A stretch of 64,000 nucleotides of DNA from NCBI GenBank assembly GCA_004431415.1, contig QPMI01000026.1:82064-146063 (forward strand), given 5' to 3'. Positions 35,198 through 48,382 of this stretch are shown piece after piece. The notes beneath the pieces are model-generated. The model had not been told where the DNA came from and ran no database searches. It saw nothing but the letters and a program-made list of their open reading frames with translations. The first letter of the stretch is position 1, and the number at the start of each line of letters is the position of its first letter. The DNA is from Cyanophora paradoxa CCMP329 (lineage: Eukaryota > Plantae > Glaucophyta). A program made the translations under genes and the position numbers.

Positions 35198-37007
35198 TCG
35201 GACGGCGCCCGCCGCGGCCGCATGACGAAGTGAGCCGCCGAAAGGGCCGATGCGGGGCGAGCTGGTCCCCGTTTCGGAGCTGGAGGAGGCGCGGGCGGAG
35301 CTCGCGCGCCTCGAGGAGGCCGAGGAGCAGGGCCGCGCCGTCGGCCGCGCCGTAGCCGCGCTCCGCGCCCTCGAGGCCGGCCCCGAGGCCGCCGGGAGCG
35401 ACGCGGTGCACGAGGCCGCCCACGTACTCGCGCAGATGGGCGCTGAGACCGCCAATTCCGGTGCCCTCCGAGCGGCGCCCGCGCTCATCTGCACTCCTTT
35501 CTCACGCCGCGCGCGCCCCAGAGGCCTTTGCGGAAGCGCTGTGGCGTGCGGGCGGCGGATACGCGCTCTACGGCCTCGTCTCGAGCCGCGACCTCGAGCT
35601 CTCGAGCCTGGGGATCTACGCGTGGGCGGCCGCCGCCGGCGCCCTCTCGCCGGGGGCCGGCGAGCTGCGGCGCGAGCTGCTGCCGGCCGCCGACATCGCC
35701 GCGCGCGTCTTCGTCGCTCTGGCGGCCCTCGAGGCGCCCCCGCCGCCCAAGCGCCCCACCAGCGCCGGCGCACACGGCGCCCCGCGGGCCCTCGGCCACG
35801 CCCCGGTGCCCGCCCGGGCTCCGCTGCGGCGGCGGCGGCGGGGCGGGGGCGGGCGCTGGCGCCGCGGCGGCCCGGGACGAGGCCTCAGAGGGCCGCCGCC
35901 GCCTCCTCCTCGCGGCCACCCGCGTCCTCCACGCCTACGCCCTCGGTCCGCCCCCGGCCCCCCGCCCTCGCGCCCGTACCCCTCGCCTCATCTGACCGAG
36001 GGGCCCGCCGGGGGGGGGGGTACAGACTTCGAGGAGCCGGCGTGCCTGCGCCGGCCCGACGTGCACGAGGCGCTGAGGGCCGTGGCCGCGGGGACCGACC
36101 CTGCCCCGCCCGCTGGCGCCCCCCCGCCCCCCCCCCGCGAGGCCGCGCGCTCCCTCGAGGGCGTACCCCTCCTCCGCCTGCTCGCCCGCTCCGCCCTCCG
36201 CGCCCTCCGCTCCCTCCGTGCGTACCCCCCCCCCCTCTCCCCCAGCCGATCTCATGGTACCCCGCAGCGGCGAAGCACGTCGAGCGGGCCGAGGCCGGCC
36301 GCACCGGCGAGCGATCCCTGTACCCCCCGCCGGTACCCGCACCCCTTCCGCCTTCCTCCCCGCCCTGCAGCCGACGCTCCGCAGGAGCTGGAGGCGGCGG
36401 GGGCGCCGTGGGGCCGCCCGCTGCCCTCGGAGCTGATGGTCGCGACGGTGGGCGCCGCCGGCTTCCGCCCCGCCCGCCGGAGCGGCGGGGGCGAGCTGCT
36501 CCGCGCCCGCCTTGCGCCGGGCCCGCCCCCGCCCGACGGGGCGGGGGCGCCCTGGCTGCTGGAGCCCCCCGGGGCGCCGGTGGGCCTGCCGGTGCAGCGG
36601 AGCCCCTTCCGCCCCGCGTCGGCGGCGAGCCCCCTCGCGGAGCACCCGGCGCGGGGCCCCGCCGCCCGCCAGGCCGCCGCCGCCGAGCGCCGCCGCGCCC
36701 TCCACGCCCCTCGCCGGCCCCGGCCGGCCCGCGGCCCGCGCGGCCGGCCCCGGAGCCGGCGCTGCAGGCGTGGGCGGGGCCGGCGGGGGGCGGGCGGCGG
36801 GGGCGGCGCGGGTCGGGTCGACGCGGCTGGCGAACACGCTGCGGCGGCTGCAGGGCGGGGCCGGCGGCCCGGCGCCCTCGCCGCTCTGGCGCACCACAGA
36901 GTAGGCACTCCGGGGACCCTGCGACCATGGCCATGACCCGGCCCCGCCGCCCCCGGCCCCGCCGCCCCGGCCCCGGCCGCCGCCCGCCGCCCGGCCCCTC
37001 GAGCGCC
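35198..37007 (+). repeat. About 1.8-kb direct duplication, copy 1 (multi-exon gene fragment, unknown helical protein)
   Basis: Both copies encode EAFAEALWRAGGGYALYGLVSSRDLELSSLG..., ELEAAGAPWGRPLPSELMVATVG...; introns shared. Confidence 0.9.
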
Positions 37008-37364
37008 CTGTCCTCGGCCGTCCGTCCGCACCCCCCCCCCCCCCCCCCCCCCCCCGCCTCCACCCCCCTGCAAGGCCTATTAGGGTCGGTGCCTCTTGGG
37101 CCCGGGGCGCTGGGCCCCCCCTTCCCCTCCACTGCATTCGTGCACTCCGATCCGGTTCCAAATGCAATGCGTGCATAATTAGCCCAAATGCTAAGCGCCG
37201 GGCCGGCGACTGGGCTGCAGACGTGGCCGAAGGGGCGAACGTTATCTTCCAATCTTGCTTAATCATGATATAATATTATAATTACTCAATCTAGCTATAG
37301 TCACCTCGAATTCTTCGTATTCTTCGCTTTTCGTTTGTCATCTTCCTTTTGACGCGTTCCTTGG

Positions 37365-40300
37365 TCAAGCGCCCTTCAACTTCGCTGTGACACCCTCCAG
37401 TGCCCCGCGAACCGTCTCCGTCCTCTCGTGCTGGGGCCCCTGGGTCCGCTCCAGCGCCGCCAGCGCCGCCTGCGCATGTGACCCGGGATCAAATTAGTAT
37501 TCGAAACTTCGCGAAACTTCGCGTCGCGCGCCTCGAGGAGCGACGCGGCCTCGGAGAGGGCCTCCCTCGCGTCCAGCTTCGAGAGGAGGTCCCCGAGGCA
37601 GTACATAGACCATGCCGTGTCCGCGTGCTCCGGGCCCAGCCCCGGCGCCTTCTTGTAGATCTGCAGAACCTCCTGCGAAGGGCGGGCCAGGTCAGGGCCT
37701 TGGGCTAAGAAGCACTAGTACTGCCAAGATGATCCAGATTTACGCGCGCCGCACCTAGTACATGAGCCGTGCCGCTGCGTAGTCGCCCTGCTGCTCTAGC
37801 AGCGTGGCCAGGTTGTGCATCGTTGCCGCGACGTTCGGGTGCTCTGGTCCGTGCACCTTCTTGTATACCCGCAGCGCCTCCTGCGAAACGTGGGCCGGGG
37901 TAGACATCAGAGCATTGGAGGACAGAGCGCGGATGAGAGAATCCAGAGTAACGCGTGCCGCACCTCGTACATGGGCCGTGCCGCAGCGTGGTCGTCCAGC
38001 TTTGTCTGCAGAAGACTGCCCAGGGTCAACATCATCTGTGCGACATCCGGGTGCTCCGGCCCGTGCACTTTCTTGTAGACCTGCAGCACCTCCTGCGGGG
38101 GGCGAGATGGGGTCGGGGCCACGGAGGAAGAAGCACGGCTGAGACGATCCAGGGCGACACGTGAAGCACCTCGTACATGGACCGCGCCGCCGCGTAGTCT
38201 TCCTGCTCCCTCAGCAGGTTGGCCAGGTTCGTCATCGTCCCTGCAACCTCAAGGTGCTCCGGCCCCAGCGCGGTTTTGTAGATCCGTAATGCCTCCTGCG
38301 GAATTCAAAGGCGGGCCAGAATCGGGACGTCGGAAGAAGGAGCACGGCCAGCGCTACGCCGATTTGATTTAGTGCGATGCGTGCCGCACCTCGAACATTG
38401 TCCGCGCCGCAGCGAAGTCGCCTTTGCCCTCCAGCAGGGTGGCCAGGTTATGCATTGTCGTCGCGACGTCCGGGTGCTCCGGCCCGAGCGCCTTCTTGCG
38501 CAGCTGCAGCGCCGCCTGCGAGGGACGGGCCAGGTTCGGCCAAGACGATACCGATGGATGCTCACTGCACCTCGAACATGGTATGCGCATCCGCAGAGTT
38601 GCCCTGGATCGATAGCAGACGGGCCAAATTGCTCATTGTCTGGGCAACGTCCGGGTGCTCCGGCCCCAGCGCCTTCTTTTGCAGCCGCAGCGCCTCCTGC
38701 GAGGGGGGTGCCACGTCAGGGCCTCGGAAAACAAGGCCGGCCAATATGATGGCGCCGTCTGAGCGGGCTGGAATCGGATCCTCGGAGGAAGCTAAAGGAG
38801 ATCGGCTAAAACAATCCAGACGCACGCCGCGCCGCACCTCGTACATGGGCCGTGCGGCTGCGTAGTCGCCCTCCCGATCTAGCAGGGCGGCCAGGTTCTG
38901 CATCGCCAGCGCGACTTCCGGGTGCTCCGGCCCGTGCGCCTTCTTGTAGACCCGCAGCGCCTCCTGCGAGGGGCAATCGCGAGTCGGGGTGGGGGCCTTG
39001 TCGGAACGGGCACAGCAATGAGGATCTAAACGGACGAGCACCGCACCTCGTACATGGGCCGCGCCGCCGCGTGGTCGCCCTGCTCCGACAGCAGGGCGCC
39101 CAGGTTCAACATCGCGTCAGCGACGCTTGTGTGCTCCGGCCCCAGCGCCGTCGTGCGGATCCGCAGCACCTCCTGTGATCACGATGGCAAGGGGCGGGCC
39201 GGGGTCGGGGCCCCGGAGGAAGCAACAACAGCTGAGACAATCCAGAGCGACACGTTACGCACCTCGTACATGGGCCGCGCCGCCGCGGAGTCTCCCTGAT
39301 TGTGCAGCACTTGGGCCAGGCTCTGTATCGTCGACGCAACTTTTGGGTGATCCGGCCCCAGCGCCTTCTTGAAGATCCGCAGCGCCTCCTGTGAGGGGCA
39401 GGCTGGGATCGGCGCCTCGGAGGAAAGAACCCGGTCAAGAGATTAAGAGGGGCGTAGAGTCGCACCTCGTTAAGGCCCCGCGCCGCCGCGTAGTCGCCCT
39501 GGTTTATCAGCAGGTTGGCAAGGTTCACCATCGTCCCCGCAAAGTCTGGGTGCTCCGGCCCCAGCGCCCGCTTCTGGACCTCCAGCGCCTCCTGCAAGAT
39601 GCGGGCCAGGCCAGGGGCTTCAAAAGAAGGAGAGAGGCCAATTGCAAGATGATACAGACGGATGCGGGACAGACCTCGTACATGGGCCGCGCCGCCGCGT
39701 AGTCGCCCTGATCCTTCAGCAGCATGGCCAGGCTTTCGATTGTGTTCGCAACGTACGGGTGCCCCGGACCCAGCGCCTGCTTCTGGATCTGCAGCGTCTC
39801 CTGCGAGCGGCGGGCCAGGGTCGGGGCCATCTAAAATTCTCAGAGGGACGCGCGCCGCACCTCGAGCATGGGCCGCGCTGCCGCGTAGTCGCCCTGGTTC
39901 TTCAGCAGGTTGGCCAGGTTCCTCATCGTCTGGGCGACGAGCGGGTCCTCCGGCCCCAGCACCTTCTTGTACACCTGTAGCGCCTCCTGCGAGGGTCGGG
40001 TCAGGGACGGGGCCTCGGAGGATGGAGCAACGCTACGACGATCCAGAGGGAGGTGCGCCGCACCTCGAACAGGGGCCGCGACTCCTTGTAGTTGCCCTGG
40101 GTCAATAGCAGAAGGGCCAAATTGTTCATCATCTGCGCAACAAATGCGTCCTCCGGTCCCAGCTCCTTCTTGCTAAGCCGCAGCGCCTCCTGCTCCAGCG
40201 CAGGAAGTTCGGGTGAGCAATCCGTGGCTGGATTTTATTGGATGAGCGCAGCACCTGCAGGAACGGGATGCCTTCTCGCGCCCGCCCCATCGTCTGCAGC

Positions 40301-43300
40301 AAGTTGCCAGCGCTGTTCAGGGCTTCGGGATCTGCATCCTCGCTCCCCAGCCGGAGCGATTCGGCATAGCGCGACGCCGCCTCGTCGGACCGCCCGCTCG
40401 CGAGCCACAGCTCCACCAGCTCGTAATCGTCCAGGCGCCCAAGGACGTCGGCGTCGCACAGGATGCCCGCCAGGCGTTCCGCCAAGTTGGGCCCGCCCCG
40501 CGCCAGCGCCCACGGGCCCTCCTCCGCCCGCCGCTGCGAGGCCGGCTGCGCGGCAAAGAACTCGCCCAGCCGCGCGTGGACGGCCGCCCGGCGCTCGGCT
40601 GCTCCTTCGCCCGCGAGACCGAACTCGAGCTCCGCCGCCTCGGCCGTGCAGCGGTGGAAGAAGGCGTACGGGCCGTCCCGGCACACGACCAGGCCCAGGA
40701 AGTCGTGCCAGAACAGCGACCACGTCACCTCGTTCGGCTCGCCGCTCGCATCCACGCCCACCAACGCCTTCAGCTCGTCCTCCGCCATCCCGTGCCGCGC
40801 GCACGCGATGGCAGACGCGACGTCCCGCGCCAGGGCCGCGCCGTGGCGCGAGGCGAGGCGGCGCAGGACGAGGCGGAAGAGGTCCCGCGGCTCGACGCCG
40901 CAGGCGAGGAACGTGTCGATGTCGGCGTCGAGGTTCGCGTGGACGGAGACGTTCGAGAGCTCGTCGAGGAGGACGGTCAGGAAGAGCGCGTTGCGGCACG
41001 CCTCCGCCCCCACGATCCGCTCGAGGCGCTCGTCGGAGAGGGCGCGCCCCTGCTCGCCGAGCACGCCCTCGACCAGCCTCCGGCGCCGGGGCCCGGTGAG
41101 GGGCGCGATCTCGCGGGCGATGTGTACTCTCGCCATCGCGGCGTCCAGGGTCGGGCCTGCGGTGCTGCGTTGGCAAGACACACATTCTTTACTGCGACGG
41201 AACCAGCACCTCGCAGGCTCGAGACGAGGATGCGGAGGCGGGGGCCGGCGGCGGGCGGGAGCCACGCGAGGCTGTGCACGGCGGGGTCGCCCCGCAGCTG
41301 GTCCAGGCCGTCCAGGACGAGGACGGTGCGGAAGGGCCAGCCGGCGCTGGCAGCGAGGAAGGCGCTCAGGCGGGCCGCCACCTCCGCGTCCGTGCCGTGC
41401 AGGTCGATCGCCTCGGCCCCGGGCCACCGGCCCTGGACCTCCTCGCTGAGGCGCCTGCCGTGCAAACCCGGGTCATCGGGGAGAGCGAGGGACGAAGAAC
41501 GAGTTGGGTACGCGGACCGGGCGACCGACGCGAGCAGCGAGCTGCTCTGGGATCCACCAATGAAGTGCACAACCACCAGGTCGTCGGGGTACGACAAATT
41601 CCACTCCCGAGCCCAGTTCGCAAGCAGCGCTGCGCGGCCCCACCGTCAGCGACGGGACAGTGCGCGCGCGTGGCCCAACGAAGGGCGGCGGACCGCTCTT
41701 GCCGCAGCCGCCCTCGCCGTGTAGGACGAGGATCTCGGGGCCCGAGGCCGCCGCGTAGGCGTGCAGGGCGGCAACGTCCTCCGCGTTGCGCACGAAGACG
41801 CGCTGCCGCGACGCCGCGAAGGCCTCGTGCTGCGCCCGCTCCGCCTCCAGCCACGGCCGCTCCTTCTCGAGGGGATACTCCTGTTCAAGCATCTGCAGCC
41901 GCGGTCAGGGCGGAGGCAAACGATCGGTGCAGGGGTACGGGCGCACCGCCTTGAGAGCGTCGCGCATGGCGAGGGCGAGCCGCTGGGCGTCGGTGTACTC
42001 GGCGACGGGCAGGCCCGCCGCTCGGATCTCGCCCTTCAGCGCTTCCAGGCGCTGCTCGGCGTAGGGGCCCTCCCCGGCCCCGCCGGTAGAGACCGCGTCC
42101 CGCATCAGGCCCGGCCCGGCCACGTAGAACAGGCTCCTGCCTCGCATCGCCTGAGGGCGGATCGTGAGGACAAGGGGCGGAGGGAAGAGAAGGCGGGAGG
42201 AGGCCGGCCGGGTCGCACCTCGAGGCGCGAGGCGGGCGGGCCGGCCCCTCCGGGCCGCGCCGCGCCTCCGAGCACGCCGGCGCGGATCTCTGCGCGCGGC
42301 CCGATCAGAAAACGGCCGCGGCCCGGCGCCCGCTCGCGCACCGATCTCGGTCACGCTGCGGTCATCCCACTCGTGCACCCAGGGGAAATCGTCCGCGGCG
42401 CAATCGAGGTTCCTGCCCCGCCCGCCCTGGCTTCAGCGGCACTTCGAAGAGAGTCGGGGACCGGAGAGGTGGGGGCGCACATGCGAAAGAGGGCGTTGCC
42501 CGTGTCGTTGGGAGGCGCGTCGGGTTGCAGGTGCCACCCGTAGCGAGCCTGCGCCGCGCCGCGTGAGCAGGGGCCCCGAGGCCCGAGGCCCCGGGCCTCG
42601 ATCTCGCGAGCAGGACGGGCGGCACCTTGAGCAGGCCGACGAAGTGCGTGCTCCGATCCACCTCCCGCAGGCACAGTAGGGTCACCAGGCCCGCCTGGCA
42701 CGCCTCCTCGTTGATGCCCCACCTGTGGCCGCGCCCGGCGGGATCAGCGCGAGGGAAGCCCAAAGCAGAGCACAAGCGGGCGGGCCTGAGATCGACGCAG
42801 TGGAAGAAGAGGCCGCGCTCCGCGCACATCGCCTTCAGCGTCGGGTTCACGAAGCTCCGGATGGCGTCCCGCTCCGCCTGCATGTCCTCTGCCGGCACGC
42901 GCGCACGGGTCGATGTCAGAGGGGCGGGCGGGCCGCGCTGGGCTAGAAGCGCTCGGCCGCGCGCGCGCACGGAAGGTTGAGGAGACGAAGATGCGCACGA
43001 CGCGCTTCTGGGCCAGCAGGCCGTCCCGCCGCGCCGCCGAGGGAGCAGGGGCCGTCTTGGGAGCGCTAGCTGTAGCGTGCACGTGGGCTTCGGCGGCCGC
43101 GGCTTTGGGAGCGACCGCTGGCGAGTCCACATGTACAGGCACGCCGTGCACGATGATCTGCTGTGGTGGCCCATCCTGGGGCGGCTTCGATGCAGGCTGC
43201 GGGGCGGTGGATGAGGCCGCCGGCGCCCCCGCAGCCAACTTTTCGATCGGCGGGCTCGCGGATGCAGGCGGTGCGCGTTTCGCCTGGCCCGCGGATGCAG

Positions 43301-43400
43301 CTGACCGGTCTAGGTCTAACTCTGCGGTGCCGGCTGCGGTGGATCCCCCGGAAGAGACTGCATTCCCTGTTCCGACTGCTTGAGAGCTGCCACACCCCAT
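37365..43400 (-). CDS. NLR-like protein: MGCxxS lipidation motif + DUF4062 + NACHT-type NTPase + TPR array (NPHP3/TEP1-like architecture)
   Basis: MGCGSS; RIFVSSTF/.DMQAER..CVDLR/WGINEE; Walker A GEGGCGKS (about 41700); Walker B VLVLDGLDQL; 12 single-repeat TPR exons plus terminal exons. In-frame TAG at 37755-37757. Confidence 0.9.
37540..40190 (-). repeat. Tandem array of about 205-bp exon+intron units, one 42-aa TPR per phase-0 exon
   Basis: Each exon reads cag|GAG GCG CTG...ATG TAC GAG|gt; the introns are mutually similar. Confidence 0.95.
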
Positions 43401-45786
43401 CGGTCAGGCTGATCGCTGTCCTCCAGACTAACGTTAACTTGTAAGTGATCGCGAGTCGCTCACGTGCGCGTTAGATTCCGGCTGATCTAATTCTGCTCGC
43501 CAAGGCGGCCGCGGGCAGCCTCCTCGATTGGGCTAACTTGCTAGAGCTCTTGATCCAGCTCCGCCTGGCGCCCGGGCGCAGAGAGGCGCAGAGAGGCTGA
43601 ATTTCAGGCTAAGAAGTCGGAGCTCATGAAAGACCCCTGCGCGGAAGAAAAAGCGGGGCTCATTCACGCAGCCGAGTCGCGCTATCGCTTCTCGCGCCGC
43701 GCTTCGAAGGGCGGGAGCAATGGAGGCGTATGCGACAGCCCGATCGCGCCGTCCTGCTCGATCTGCTTCCGCCATTGCAAATTGCGGGTTCGTGCGCGTG
43801 CGCCAGCGTCCGAAGAGGAGCTGCGGCATCGTGCCGCAAAGCTGACAAGCCCGCGGCGCTCCAGGTACCGTAAGGAACCTGCGGCTGGAAATCGGGACTG
43901 CGCCGGCGCGCTGCGGGCGGGCGGGCACGCGCCCCGGCCCGCCCGCTCGGTAGGGTCGTCTCCACGCGCGGAGGCGCGTGCAAGCGCCCCTCTCCGACCA
44001 CCCGCGCCGCCCCCGCGCCCGCCGCGCGCGAGGCGCCGCTTGCATATGCCTCCCGGCGCCCCCGCCGGCACCCCGCGGGGTCGAGAGGGCCGGCGCCGGC
44101 TCCCACACAGCGCGGGGCCGGCGCGCCGGTCCGAACCGGTCATAGGCTCCGCCCCGCGCCGCCGCCGCCGGCGACGAGAAGCGCCGCGCGCGCGCGCCCG
44201 GTCCGCCCCGCCCGCCCGCCCGCGCGGACCCCGGGAGCGGCAGGCGGTGGCGGGTCGGAGCGGCGGCGACGCTGCTGGGCGCGGGACGGGCCTCGAGGAG
44301 ACGCCCGCCTCGAGCTCGGGCGGCGGCGCGGGCGAGCACGGAGAAGGGTGGGCTCGAGGAGGGGCTCGTCGCCCGCGTACCCCTCCCGGCCTCTGCGTCG
44401 CCCAGGCGCGTACCCCCCGCCCCGGCCAGACCCGCCCCGGGCCCCCTCCGACGCCCGCGGCGCAGGCGGCGACGGGCGGCGCCGGTGCCTTTACCCCGCG
44501 AGCTCCGCGTGCACCCGGTCCCGCCCGCCCGCCGGCGAGCTCCGCGCGCCCGGCGCCGGCGACGACCCCTCCCCCCCCGGTCCTCCCTTCGTGCTCGGCC
44601 GGCGGGGGCCCTCCCTCGCCGGCCCGGGCCGCCCCAGCGACCCTTCCCCGCGACGGCGCGGCGCGGGCGGCGGCGGGGCCGGGGCAGCGGGCCCTCCCGC
44701 CTCTTCCCCAGTCTTCCCCACGGCAGTCTTCCTCCCCCCGGGGCCCTCCCGCCTCCCCCGGGGCAGCGGCGGCGCGCGGCGCGGCCGGCGGTGGGGCCGG
44801 CCGCCGTTCGGGCGAGAGGCCGCTCATCAGCCGCCCGAACTCTCCGGCTCCCTCGCGCCTGTACCCCGCCGTACCTCATTCCCCCCTCCAGACCCTCTCG
44901 GACGCCCGTCTTCCGGGGTACCCCCTCTTCTCCTCCCCTAAACGGCGCCTTCGCGCCCGCCGCGCGCTCGCCTCCGGCCGATGCTCCGGGTACCCCCCGC
45001 TCGTGCGCTCCCCCTACCCCCTCTCCGCGGCCTCTCCCTCGATCCTCTATTGATTCCTAACCGTGTCCAGGCGAGGGCGGTACTGCAGCTGCAGGCGACG
45101 GCGGTTGCGCCGCAGAGGTCGCCGTCGATCGCGCCGCCGCCCTCCTCCTGGTACCCCCCTCGAGCATCCCAAGCCGCGGGGTACGCGGGCGCCGCGGGCG
45201 GCGCGCGACCTTTTTCCCTCTACCCCATCGTTCTCGACTGAGACCTCTGCTCTCGGGTACCCCCCTCCCCGCCTAAAACTTCCCGTACCCCCTCCGACCC
45301 CTCCTCCCCTCCCTCCAGCTCTCGGAACGGGAACAGCTGCGGCTGCCCACGATCGGGTACCCCTGTGTCTTCCCCAGGTACTCTTTCTCCTTCTCTCTCC
45401 TTCCTCCCTCATCCCCCTTCTCCTTATCTGACTCCCCCACTCCCGTGCAGGTACCCCCTCTCCTTCCCCAGGATACCCTATACGGCACGGCTCTCTTCAT
45501 TCGGGTACCCCCCCTTCTCTTCCCCCGTGTGTGCTGTTTCTCCTTCTCTCTCCTTCTCTGACCCTCGCCCCCCGGAAAAGGGACCCCTACCCCCCCGCCC
45601 TCCTTCTCAGGTACCCCCCTTCCTCCCTCCTCCCTTCCGAGCCCTCCGAGCCCTGAGCCGTATCTGAGGGGCGAGCGCAGGCGGCGCCGGGTGCCTCTCC
45701 GAAAGCGCAGCAAGGCCGGCGGCAGAGCCGGCGGCGGCAAGGCCGCGTCCTTACGCGCGGCGCGGAGGGCGGGTCGGCTGTCAGCG

Positions 45787-47616
45787 CGGACGGCCCCGCC
45801 CGCCGCGGCCGCGCGACGGGGCGAGCCGCCGGAAGGGCCGCCAGGGCGGCGCGGGCGGAGCTGACGCGCCTCGGGGCCAGGGCAGCGCTGGCGGAGCTGG
45901 CCGCGCCGGTGCGGCAGGGCCGTGTCGTCGGCCGCGCCGTAGCGGCGCTCCGCGCCCTCGAGGCCGGCCCGAGGCCGCCGGGGGCGACGCGGTGCGCGAG
46001 GCCGCCCGCGCGCTCGCGCAGACGGGCGCTGAGACCGCCAACCCCGGTGCCCTCCGAGCGGCGCCCGCGCTCACCTGCACTCCTTTCTCACGCCGCGCGC
46101 GTTCCAGAGGCCTTCGCGGAGGCGCTGTGGCGTGCGGGCGGCGGCTACGCGCTCTACGGCCTCGTCTCGAGCCGCGACCTCGAGCTCTCGAGCTTGGGAT
46201 CTACGCGTGGCGGCCGCCGGCGGCGCCCTCTCGCCGGGGGCCGACGAGCTGCGGCGGGCGCTGCTGCCGGCCGCCGACATCGCCGCGCGCGTCTTCGTCG
46301 CTCTGGCGGCCCTCGAGGCGCCCCCGCCGTCAAGCGCCCCGCCAGCGCCGCCGCCCCCGGCGCCCCACGGGCCCCGTCCACGCCCCGGCGCACGCCCGGG
46401 CTCCGCTGCGGCGGCGGCGGCGGGGCGGGGCGGGCGCTGGCGCCGCGGCGGCCCGGGGACGAGGCCTCAGAGGGCCGCCGCCGCCTCCTCCTCGCGGCCG
46501 CCCGCGTCCTCCACGCCTACGCCCTCGGTCCGCCCCCGCCCCCGAGCCCTCGCGCACGTACCCCCCTCATCTGAACGAGCGGCCCGCGCGGGGGTACAGA
46601 CTTCGAGGAGCCGGCGTGCCTGCGCCGGCCCGACGTGCACGAGGCGCTGAGGGCCGTCGCCGCGGGCCCGCCCCGCCGCGCCCGCAGGCGCCCCCCGCCC
46701 CCCTCCGCGAGGCCGCGCGCTCCCTCGAGGGCGTACCCCTCCTCCGCCTGCTCGCCCGCTCCGCCCTCCGCGCCCTCCGCTCCCTCCGTGCGTACCCCCC
46801 CTCCCCCCCCAGCCGATCTCATGGTACCCCGCAGCGGCGAAGCACGTCGAGCGGGCCGAGGCCGGCCGCACCGGCGAGCGATCCCTGTACCCCCGCCGGT
46901 ACCCGTACCCCTTCGCCTTCCTCCCCACCCCGCAGCCGACGCTCCGCAGGAGCTGGAGGCGGCGGGGGCGCCGTGGGGCCGCCCGCTGCCCTCGGAGCTG
47001 ATGGTCGCGACGGTGGGCGCCGCCGGCTTCCGCCCGCCCGCCGGAGCGGCGGGGGCGAGCTGCTCCGCGCCCGCCTCGCGCCGGGCCCGCCCCGCCCGAC
47101 GGGGCGGGGGCGCCCTGGCTGCTGGAGCCCCCGGGGCGCCGGTGGGCCTCCCGGTGCAGCGGAGCCCCTTCCGCCCCGCGTCGGCGGCGAGCCCCCTCGC
47201 GGAGCACCCGGCGCGCGGCCCCGCCGCCCGCCAGGCCGCCGCCGCCGAGCGCCGCCGCGCCCTCCACGCCCCTCGCCGGCCCCGGCCGGCCCGCGGCCCG
47301 CGCGGCCGGCCCCGGAGCCGGCGCTGCAGGCGTTGGCGGGGCCGGCGGGCGGCGGGCGGCGGGGGCGGCGCGGGTCGGGTCGACGCGGCTCGCGAACACG
47401 CTGCGGCGGCTGCAGGGCGGGGCCGGCGGCCCGGCGCCCTCGCCGCTCTGGCGCACCACAGAGTAGGCACCCCGGGAACTCTGCGACCCCGTGTCCCGCC
47501 GCCCCGCCGCCCCCGGCCCCGCCGCCCCGGGCCCGCCACCCCGGGCCCGGCCGCCGGCCCCGGCGCCGGCCGCCGCCGCGCCGCCCGGCCTCTCGCCGCG
47601 AGCACCCTCGAGCGCC
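45787..47616 (+). repeat. About 1.8-kb direct duplication, copy 2 (many 1-nt indels)
   Basis: Same exons and introns as 35198-37007, but frameshifted. Confidence 0.9.
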
Positions 47617-48382
47617 GTCGCATTGATACACCACGGCACATGTATCAATGTTCTACGTGACGTGCCCTTCCGACCGGTCAACTATCTAGCCGAAGGTGCT
47701 AGCTAGGTGCCGGCCATGGGTCGCTCAATATGGGAGGTTCGCCTGAGTGGGGGAGCCATGGTTTTCGGTGATAGCCGTAACCAGACCCGCGCGCCCACCC
47801 CTTGATCAACTCCTCCATCCCTCATGAGCCCTGGAAGTGAAATGTCCCGCAGTCCGCCGCCCTCCCTTGCCGCCGCTCCGCCACCCCTCCTCCTCCTCAC
47901 TCCGCCTCCTCCCTCCTCCTCACCTGCGCCCCAGGACCCCGATTAATCGGTGTCCCGTTTTGTCGAGGTGAAGAAGGTGGTAGGAGGAAGATATGAGGAA
48001 GGAGAGGGAGTGGGCGGAGGCAGCAGCCTGGGGCGGGCAGCGGATGCGGGGCAAGCTTAAGGCGGGGAGAGGTGCCGGCCGCGGGACGGCAGAGTGGAGA
48101 GAGCGTGGGCACTGACAGCTGCAGGCGGCGCAGATCTAGAGAGCTGGGAGTGCGGAGGCGAGGCGGGCCGCGAGGGGTCGGGAGGGGTCAACCGGGTTAG
48201 AGGGGGGGGGCCGATGCCCGGGGGCGGCCGAAGCCATGGGTTGGCCGGAGCCAGGGGGTACCGGTGGCCGAAGCCGATGGGGTGGCCAAAGCCAAAGGGG
48301 GGCCGAGGCCATAGAAGGGCCGAAGCCATGGGGTGGCCAGAGCCGGCGGGGGTCTGACACTAGTACTTGAGGGTCGATTGGG

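Follow-up and report, generated by a model that had tools for sequence, protein, structure and literature searches.

We analyzed a 64,000-nt stretch of Cyanophora paradoxa CCMP329 DNA (contig QPMI01000026.1, positions 82,064 to 146,063; hereafter the window) that carries the gene of interest on its minus strand. The window exons match the EukProt protein tig00000123_g6933.t1 (hereafter P0156) at 100%, and exons 2-7 reproduce the borders of P0156 exactly (Table 1). The public model is nevertheless wrong at both ends, as it misses the start that carries a putative acylation motif and masks an in-frame stop. P0156 begins at 43174 and includes an extra intron, whereas we place the start at 43400, where the first ATG to follow an in-frame TGA opens a frame that begins with MGCGSS. 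RNA-like contigs cover 43181-43366 of this first exon. The gene is transcribed and spliced, and all 23 exons upstream of the C-terminal cap are intact together with their splice sites. Full-length analyses used the database protein P0156, and the exons were searched individually rather than as a joined model running from MGCGSS to array exon 12. No Pfam match came from the mechanical open reading frames on either side of the gene (27-37 kb and 43.5-49 kb), and PADLOC returned generic TPR matches only.

Table 1. Features of the gene, in positions of the window.
Feature	Position	Strand	Content
Exon 1	42971..43400	-	Proposed start MGCGSS, low-complexity linker, beginning of DUF4062/NIR (RIFVSSTF)
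Exons 2-7	41947..42888	-	DUF4062/NIR TIR-like domain and linker
Exons 2-4, borders	42888-42786, 42722-42626, 42548-42481	-	Intron 42785-42723 is GC-AG
Exons 5-7, borders	42412-42342, 42289-42219, 42150-41947	-	T-E-I-E motif straddles the exon 5/6 junction
Exons 8-11	40255..41892	-	NACHT, NPHP3-like helical domain, first degenerate TPR helix
Exons 8-11, borders	41892-41694, 41629-41518, 41454-41210, 41156-40255	-	
Cassette array	37755..40189	-	12 phase-0 exons (11 x 126 nt, 1 x 129 nt), 11 internal introns
Array exons 1-4	40189-40064, 39986-39861, 39800-39675, 39591-39466	-	
Array exons 5-8	39388-39263, 39172-39047, 38963-38838, 38696-38571	-	
Array exons 9-12	38515-38390, 38295-38170, 38092-37964 (129 nt), 37880-37755	-	
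Two former C-terminal cap exons	37365..37672 (37672-37532, 37469-37365)	-	GC-AG intron between them

An initial annotation of this DNA had described a lipid-anchored DUF4062-NACHT-TPR protein, and profile scores bear out that architecture. In P0156, DUF4062 (PF13271) reaches 44.1 bits (cutoff 24.7) and NACHT (PF05729) 29.1 bits (cutoff 26.7); AAA_16 is also matched, while NB-ARC falls below threshold (15.8 bits against 23.5) and the NPHP3_hel match is weak (E 4e-4). The NACHT motifs can be read directly, with GEGGCGKS as Walker A and VLVLDGLDQL as Walker B. We propose that MGCGSS is a myristoylation/palmitoylation-type (dual-acylation) motif and thus a predicted lipid anchor. Its place after an in-frame TGA and the similar starts of paralogs (MGCCQSK, MGCCKSR and MGCRGSK, pattern MGC[CR]x[SK]) uphold this part of the annotation as well.

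The DUF4062/NIR domain aligns with the crystallized TIR-like domain of TEP1 (chain 11gz_A), both as a family profile (E 2e-51) and as a single protein (E 2.4e-17). The T-E-I-E motif is aligned with T-E-M-E of TEP1, in which the second glutamate occupies chain position 115; we infer that this residue would be E1008 if the 220-residue chain starts at residue 894, with a construct covering 895-1113. The aligned glutamate is at least 90% conserved across 20 homologues. The catalytic glutamate of the TIR-like NADase site thus appears to be kept, and NADase activity is predicted for this protein.

Downstream of these domains lies the cassette array. Coordinates and splice sites confirm the twelve phase-0 exons of 126 nt (one of 129 nt) that had been described, and all of the five-residue strings listed for their variable positions, from QMMNN to ATMHN, are found in the exons. 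Exon flanks throughout are ...CAG|GAG and GAG|GTGCGG-type sites, and the array introns are all of phase 0 and 55-141 nt long. The 11 introns upstream of the array are of mixed phase (1,2,0,2,1,0,0,1,2,1,0), so a run of twelve consecutive phase-0 introns is not a general property of the gene. Individual exons match TPR_12 and TPR_10 with E values of 1e-9 to 1e-12. The claim that each exon encodes one TPR stands in so far as each carries one 42-residue period, but the exon is not one structural TPR. Exon residues 17-42 match TPR_10 positions 1-26. An AF2 model (pLDDT 91) puts all exon borders near residue 10 of helix B, which is 19 residues long, so that each exon corresponds to one KLC-type TPR period whose borders bisect a helix. 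The best structural matches of the modeled solenoid include the TPR domains of KLC1/2.

The array introns are homologous to one another, as the annotation had stated: they align with a normalized score of 0.243, where shuffles give 0.118 +/- 0.020, and a 21-nt motif is present within them in four copies where 0.01 are expected. These homologous introns, which all interrupt helix B at the same position, show that the array grew from a single exon-plus-intron unit that was duplicated repeatedly. We also considered whether the introns are introner-like in origin; within the window the intron motif is confined to the array. The units themselves are old and about equally diverged, which gives no sign of recent shuffling at the locus. 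A search among the units for block duplication or a lag pattern detected neither, and tblastn of the 12 units against the window matched the 12 exons and a cap exon alone, with no relic, inverted or extra TPR exons in the introns.

Variation among the units is concentrated at exon positions 16, 19, 22, 26, 29 and 30, where identity is 0.07 compared with 0.68 for the scaffold. The variable helix positions noted in the initial annotation thus correspond to one face of helix A: all six lie in this helix of the confident solenoid model, and across 110 units of the family no positions vary more than these. At these positions dN is 1.76 and dS 0.39-0.44, although strong GC3 codon bias may depress dS. 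Intron divergence (0.355) is close to synonymous divergence (0.335), though neutral divergence may be higher than the optimized alignment of introns makes it look. In 2000 neutral star-tree simulations the diversity of the observed units was never reached, a result to be read with the six sites having been chosen after the data were seen and with P rising to about 0.01 at an assumed p of 0.45. Taken with the model, this excess of nonsynonymous change over neutral expectation suggests diversifying change at the six residues, which lie on a face of helix A that is exposed.

The gene belongs to a family of at least 20 Cyanophora paralogs that form one lineage-specific clade (SH-aLRT 100) and share an architecture of N-acylation motif, DUF4062 (NIR/TIR-like NADase), NACHT and TPR, with 2-12 TPR units each. 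The cassette exon layout is known here from one locus, and the paralogs were compared as proteins. We infer that the array changes over evolutionary time as units are duplicated or lost in the germline and as diversifying selection acts on the six residues. The best matches outside Cyanophora are bacterial metagenome-assembled proteins, and bacterial relatives with this architecture are 31-37% identical in the NIR-NACHT-helical part. Horizontal transfer from bacteria was considered, but the clade is left unplaced by the unrooted quick tree, and we make no claim of transfer. A literature search found no report of the family or of its exon layout in Cyanophora or glaucophytes.

The initial annotation drew a parallel to exon-shuffled receptor genes of Ectocarpus, and the comparison is apt. 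The NB-ARC-TPR candidate receptors of this brown alga, for which an immune-receptor role has been proposed, have 126-nt exons each encoding a 42-aa TPR, vary in repeat number between paralogs and bear signatures of positive selection at exposed residues (Zambounis et al. 2012, PMC3341825). They are the closest precedent for the Cyanophora gene, sharing the symmetric exon with its 42-aa period, the variable repeat number and the excess of change at exposed residues. The Cyanophora NTPase differs in being a NACHT rather than an NB-ARC domain, the protein adds DUF4062/NIR and the acylation motif, there are no inactivated TPR exons in the introns, and the host belongs to the glaucophytes and not to the stramenopiles. 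Similar in architecture are also the eukaryotic proteins TEP1, NWD1/2, NPHP3 and TTC41 and bacterial NIR-Avs2, which likewise combine an N-terminal DUF4062/NIR domain and its glutamate with a STAND NTPase and C-terminal repeats. DUF4062/NIR is reported to act as an NADase in bacterial Avs2 and in human TEP1, and proteins of the NIR-NLR-like kind are widespread in eukaryotes; the lipid anchor and exon-cassette structure found here are not described in these papers (bioRxiv 10.64898/2026.09.04.749371; 10.64898/2026.05.01.722283).

We consider the gene to be, probably though by no means securely, a transcribed NLR-like STAND immune sensor of a Cyanophora-specific expansion, a predicted NADase whose array changes by unit gain and loss. 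For all Cyanophora members, immune function and NAD+ hydrolysis are read from sequence. The transcript appears to be spliced constitutively in genomic order. The TPR groove of the protein would bind a non-self or stress ligand, upon which NACHT would oligomerize and the NIR domain be activated at a membrane, and the resulting cleavage of NAD+ would lead to growth arrest or cell death.

The initial annotation had instead proposed a combinatorial receptor, in which symmetric cassettes are skipped or somatically recombined to yield many variants from one gene. Its premise holds: all 12 exons are of phase 0 and of about equal length, the introns between them are homologous, and any exon could in principle be removed in frame. 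Somatic recombination was raised as a hypothesis by the Ectocarpus authors (PMC3341825), and exonic modularity of NLR repeat domains is named as a precondition for alternative splicing of human NLRP3 by Hoss et al. (2019, PMC6642158), where the strictly modular exons of the human NLRP LRR permit in-frame loss and skipping of NLRP3 exon 5 is shown. The locus itself argues otherwise. RNA-like contigs from three runs join exons consecutively at exactly the borders given above (8-9-10-11 and 11-12-13 in array numbering, 13 being the first cap exon), and none of the RNA contigs placed on the locus skips an exon, a weak test of isoforms in that contigs drop rare variants. Joints such as 37640>39373 and 37470>40177 could be read as splicing, but they also occur in a DNA run and carry paralog-like inserted letters, and we attribute them to paralogous contigs. 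A protein search with array exons 6-11 (P0156:953-1205) for transcript-derived fragments that lack exons matched only generic TPR proteins at no more than 56% identity, none of them from Cyanophora. The window is matched by one DNA run that is colinear with it and identical to it. The units are old and about equally diverged, they have no block structure, and the introns hold no relic or inverted exons. Introns of 55-141 nt, moreover, favor intron-defined splicing, and genes with very short introns usually retain introns instead of skipping exons. We therefore regard the combinatorial receptor as highly improbable, and hold the same low expectation for within-clone diversification, whether through regulated exon skipping or through mitotic unequal recombination between homologous introns. 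Were it to occur, a population of this unicellular glaucophyte would hold a variable repertoire of NADase-coupled sensors.

Two further readings concern whether this copy works, and whether it works in immunity. Array exon 12 ends in an in-frame TAG (37757-37755) where the other array exons have GAG. This TAG is seen in the DNA as well as in RNA contigs from two runs, and it would remove the C-terminal cap from the protein of this copy. Both cap exons show homology with the C-terminal cap that paralogs P0001, P0158 and P0159 have; the coordinates of the second follow the gene model. In RNA contigs, position 37672 is joined to array exon 12, and contigs from two runs support the GC-AG cap intron, so that exons which are still open are spliced into RNA downstream of the stop and are probably 3'UTR in this copy. 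Since the cap exons are still open, the stop appears to have been gained recently. Exon junctions downstream of a stop could trigger NMD, and here there are two, the second about 140 nt away. This copy may thus be decaying, and it could be a young pseudogene or truncated allele in an otherwise functional family; we judge this unlikely, if worth serious consideration, given that the 23 upstream exons remain intact and expressed and that truncation costs the cap alone, leaving 12 periods. A non-immune role, as an NPHP3-like housekeeping scaffold that is myristoylated and signals at the flagellum or membrane, strikes us as rather improbable. Cyanophora is a flagellate, and human NPHP3 also has an N-terminal MG motif like that of our gene. 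Full-length human NPHP3, along with NWD1/2, is inactive in vitro, showing no NADase activity (bioRxiv 10.64898/2026.09.04.749371; 10.64898/2026.05.01.722283). Weak matches to NPHP3-specific models point the same way, but every one lies below its curated cutoff (score/cutoff: NPHP3 24.7/33, NPHP3_N 24.1/24.8, NPHP3_hel 18.6-20.9/27.9, TPR_NPHP3 up to 31/100), and a lineage-specific family of at least 20 paralogs, which differ in repeat number and are hypervariable at groove residues, is atypical of a conserved single-copy ciliary gene.

Archaeplastida are reported to be NIR-poor (9%; bioRxiv 10.64898/2026.09.04.749371; 10.64898/2026.05.01.722283), yet Cyanophora holds a large expansion of predicted lipid-anchored NIR-NACHT-TPR genes, with the catalytic glutamate retained. 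Cyanophora may accordingly be a tractable place to ask whether the DUF4062/NIR NADase serves cell-autonomous immunity in eukaryotes. The one-repeat-per-exon layout is already known from brown algae. As in human NLRP genes (PMC6642158), modular exons encode the repeat sensor of a NACHT protein, with TPR in place of LRR and with only constitutive splicing seen in the Cyanophora contigs. An NLR-like design found in brown-alga NB-ARC-TPR/ROCO genes and vertebrate NLRP LRRs would now extend to a glaucophyte. A Pelomyxa schiedti homologue (P0256, locus L001) has the same DUF4062-NACHT-TPR architecture and an MGC N-terminus, and its many introns are placed irregularly in the TPR region (exons of 14-83 aa). 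The period-locked intron is therefore specific to Cyanophora rather than inherited with the family, and the design was built there independently, from one exon-intron unit.

Scanning for AG-ORF-GT units, followed by explicit extraction, yielded 12 exons on the minus strand of the window, which is eukaryotic and 67% GC. These proved to be the phase-0 exons of 126 nt, one of 129 nt, that the initial annotation had described, and translation recovered the TPR scaffold in every exon and all 12 of its five-residue strings. Single array exons match TPR_12 and TPR_10 with E values of 1e-9 to 1e-12.

Cassette exons of the array, in window coordinates
Exon	Position	Strand	Length (nt)
1	40189-40064	minus	126
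2	39986-39861	minus	126
3	39800-39675	minus	126
4	39591-39466	minus	126
5	39388-39263	minus	126
6	39172-39047	minus	126
7	38963-38838	minus	126
8	38696-38571	minus	126
9	38515-38390	minus	126
10	38295-38170	minus	126
11	38092-37964	minus	129
12	37880-37755	minus	126

The array introns measure, in order, 77, 60, 83, 77, 90, 83, 141, 55, 94, 77 and 83 nt, and the intron after exon 12 is 82 nt; all 12 are GT-AG and phase 0, whereas the remaining 11 introns of the gene have mixed phases. The homology proposed for the array introns was borne out, as they align end to end with a normalised score of 0.243 against 0.118 ± 0.020 in shuffles, and a 21-nt motif has four copies in the window, all of them in array introns, against 0.01 expected. 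Together, the extraction, TPR matches, intron homology, motif and contrast in phase exclude chance: the one-period-per-exon array with homologous introns is real. Eleven of the 12 exons start with GAG right after CAG, a tandem NAGNAG-type acceptor at which one glutamate per junction could in principle be lost.

In an AlphaFold2 model of residues 690-1205 of P0156, the public protein model of this gene (mean pLDDT 91.1, pTM 0.82), the exon borders all lie close to residue 10 of the 19-residue helix B, and exon residues 17-42 correspond to TPR_10 positions 1-26. Each exon thus spans the latter half of one helix B, then the loop, helix A and the turn, and ends midway through the following helix B. 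The earlier equation of one exon with one TPR holds for the repeat period and not for the structural TPR, which the borders bisect in helix B. A fold search with this model ranked the APPBP2 and OGT/SPINDLY solenoids highest, and its matches also included the KLC1/2 cargo-binding TPR domains, at 30-36% identity.

The reading of the gene as a diversifying NLR-like sensor is well supported. Within the array, exon positions 16, 19, 22, 26, 29 and 30 have entropies of 2.75-3.08 bits, and mapping them on the model placed all six on one face of helix A (exon residues 15-30), spaced 3-3-4-3-1. Five of the six are TPR positions 2, 5, 9, 12 and 13 in standard numbering, which line the concave groove. 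Identity between units is 0.07 at the six sites versus 0.68 in the scaffold. Subject to strong GC3 codon bias, optimised intron alignments and possible unit conversion, the suggested site-wise comparison gave an excess at the six sites, with a Nei-Gojobori dN of 1.76 against a dS of 0.39 in the scaffold and 0.44 overall; scaffold dN/dS is 0.5. Intron p-distance (0.355) is near synonymous pS (0.335). The sites were picked after seeing the data, a choice for which the neutral simulation corrects: the diversity of the six most diverse codons was reached in 0 of 2000 star-tree simulations at intron/synonymous divergence, and in a fraction of 0.0095 at p = 0.45. The six sites also rank among the most variable when 110 units of 28 paralogs are compared, and position 6 is likewise highly variable there.

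The initial annotation had further read the cassettes as a combinatorial receptor. Logan contigs from three RNA-like runs and one DNA run were placed on 37450-43430 (5,981 letters). One RNA contig runs through exons 8, 9, 10 and 11, and two contain the whole of exon 12, TAG included, preceded by the end of exon 11 and spliced to the exon that starts at 37672. In the RNA contigs every join is consecutive and at a predicted border, and the DNA run covers the array colinearly with zero differences, leaving the combinatorial headline unsupported. No skipped-exon joins were seen in the contigs of the three RNA-like runs; since contigs lose rare variants, the consecutive joins are weak evidence against exon skipping. 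Many other contig joints were considered as splicing of this gene and attributed to paralogs, as the DNA run has them too and they contain paralog-like letters. Joints 37470/40177 and 37640/39373, found in DNA and RNA-like contigs and some with ~10 foreign letters between, probably represent paralogous loci or transcripts of different unit content. One RNA contig is readable as a paralog junction of ...PMYE to EALRVRK.

The last codon of exon 12 is TAG (37757-37755); the other exons have GAG there. The TAG is present in DNA and RNA contigs, and the latter firmly place this in-frame stop in the main transcript. Two cap exons 3' of it (37365-37672) retain open frames and are spliced in RNA. P0156 is wrong in two places, its start and its exon 12 donor. 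To bypass the TAG it splices from a cryptic donor eight codons into exon 12, a junction at odds with the RNA contigs. It also begins at 43174 and adds an intron; the open frame instead begins at 43400, where MGCGSS immediately follows an in-frame TGA. RNA contigs span 43181-43366, and paralog N-termini read MGCCQSK, MGCCKSR, MGCRGSK and similar. Exact borders were derived for exons 1-11 of the gene. Two of its introns are GC-AG: 42723-42785, 63 nt, in-frame and within the DUF4062 domain, and 37470-37531, spliced out in RNA contigs from two runs and kept in those of a third.

P0156 (tig00000123_g6933.t1, 1294 aa) otherwise agrees with the window exons at every residue, which identifies the window as Cyanophora paradoxa, and full-length analyses rest on this model. 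The large helical-domain exon was searched against 1.84 billion representative proteins, with a best match at 84% identity and then a series at 44-63%; all ten matches looked up were Cyanophora paradoxa EukProt or bacterial TPR proteins. A second search found at least 20 C. paradoxa paralogs with DUF4062, NACHT and TPR families, and the paralogs group in a single clade (SH-aLRT 100). Their unit number ranges from 2 to 12. In P0001, a paralog with a C-terminal cap, similarity among units is 84-93%, a sign of recent duplication or homogenisation; units of the window gene show deep, about equal divergence, with no block pattern among them.

In a Pelomyxa schiedti homologue that shares the domain architecture, TPR-region introns sit at irregular positions, so the period-locked intron is a Cyanophora innovation, spread via duplication of exon-intron units. 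The Pelomyxa locus (L001, 3001-8531) has ~32 exons, tiny 39-93-nt introns and an MGC start, which suggests that the acylation motif predates the Cyanophora family. The parallel drawn with Ectocarpus NB-ARC-TPR genes stands, as their 126-nt, 42-aa TPR exons have the same layout (PMC3341825), but Ectocarpus has relic TPR exons in introns, whereas none were found in the array introns or on the opposite strand. A conceptual likeness is found in human NLRP proteins, whose LRR exons are modular (PMC6642158). A literature search found no publications on this family or exon layout in glaucophytes.

DUF4062 (44.1 bits, cutoff 24.7) and NACHT (29.1 bits, cutoff 26.7) both pass on P0156, and no NPHP3-specific model exceeded threshold. 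Three 2026 preprints place DUF4062 in anti-phage defence. Two of them show DUF4062 to be a TIR-like NADase ('NIR'), an effector in bacterial Avs2 and other defence systems that is active in human TEP1; eukaryotic NIR proteins are mostly NLR-like, with low prevalence in Archaeplastida (bioRxiv 10.64898/2026.09.04.749371; 10.64898/2026.05.01.722283). The window protein matches the TEP1 TIR-like crystal chain (E 2.4e-17), as does a 20-sequence family profile (E 2e-51). The T-E-M-E of TEP1 aligns with T-E-I-E here, the second E being at least 90% conserved in the alignment. This second E is presumably the catalytic E1008 of TEP1, by inferred construct numbering (895-1113, 220-residue chain). The protein falls within the class of NIR-NLR-like proteins described in 2026; architecture and residue conservation are evident at the sequence level, and we infer NADase activity and an immune role. 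By the usual STAND logic, ligand would bind in the TPR groove, NACHT would then oligomerise, and the NADase would be activated at a membrane.

Outside Cyanophora, the best-matching relatives of the NIR-NACHT-helical part (among proteins P0163-P0190) share the architecture at 31-37% identity; they are mostly unnamed metagenome proteins and, where named, bacterial (Acidobacteriota, Ignavibacteria, Kapabacteria). Eukaryotic matches reach 29-34%, and a quick unrooted tree did not settle the origin. Around the gene, the stretch 43500-47700 has a GC content of 77-79%, long spurious ORFs on each strand and zero Pfam matches, and just 3' of the gene lie GC-rich microsatellites (36706-36996) and a 38-nt poly-C run (37031-37068).
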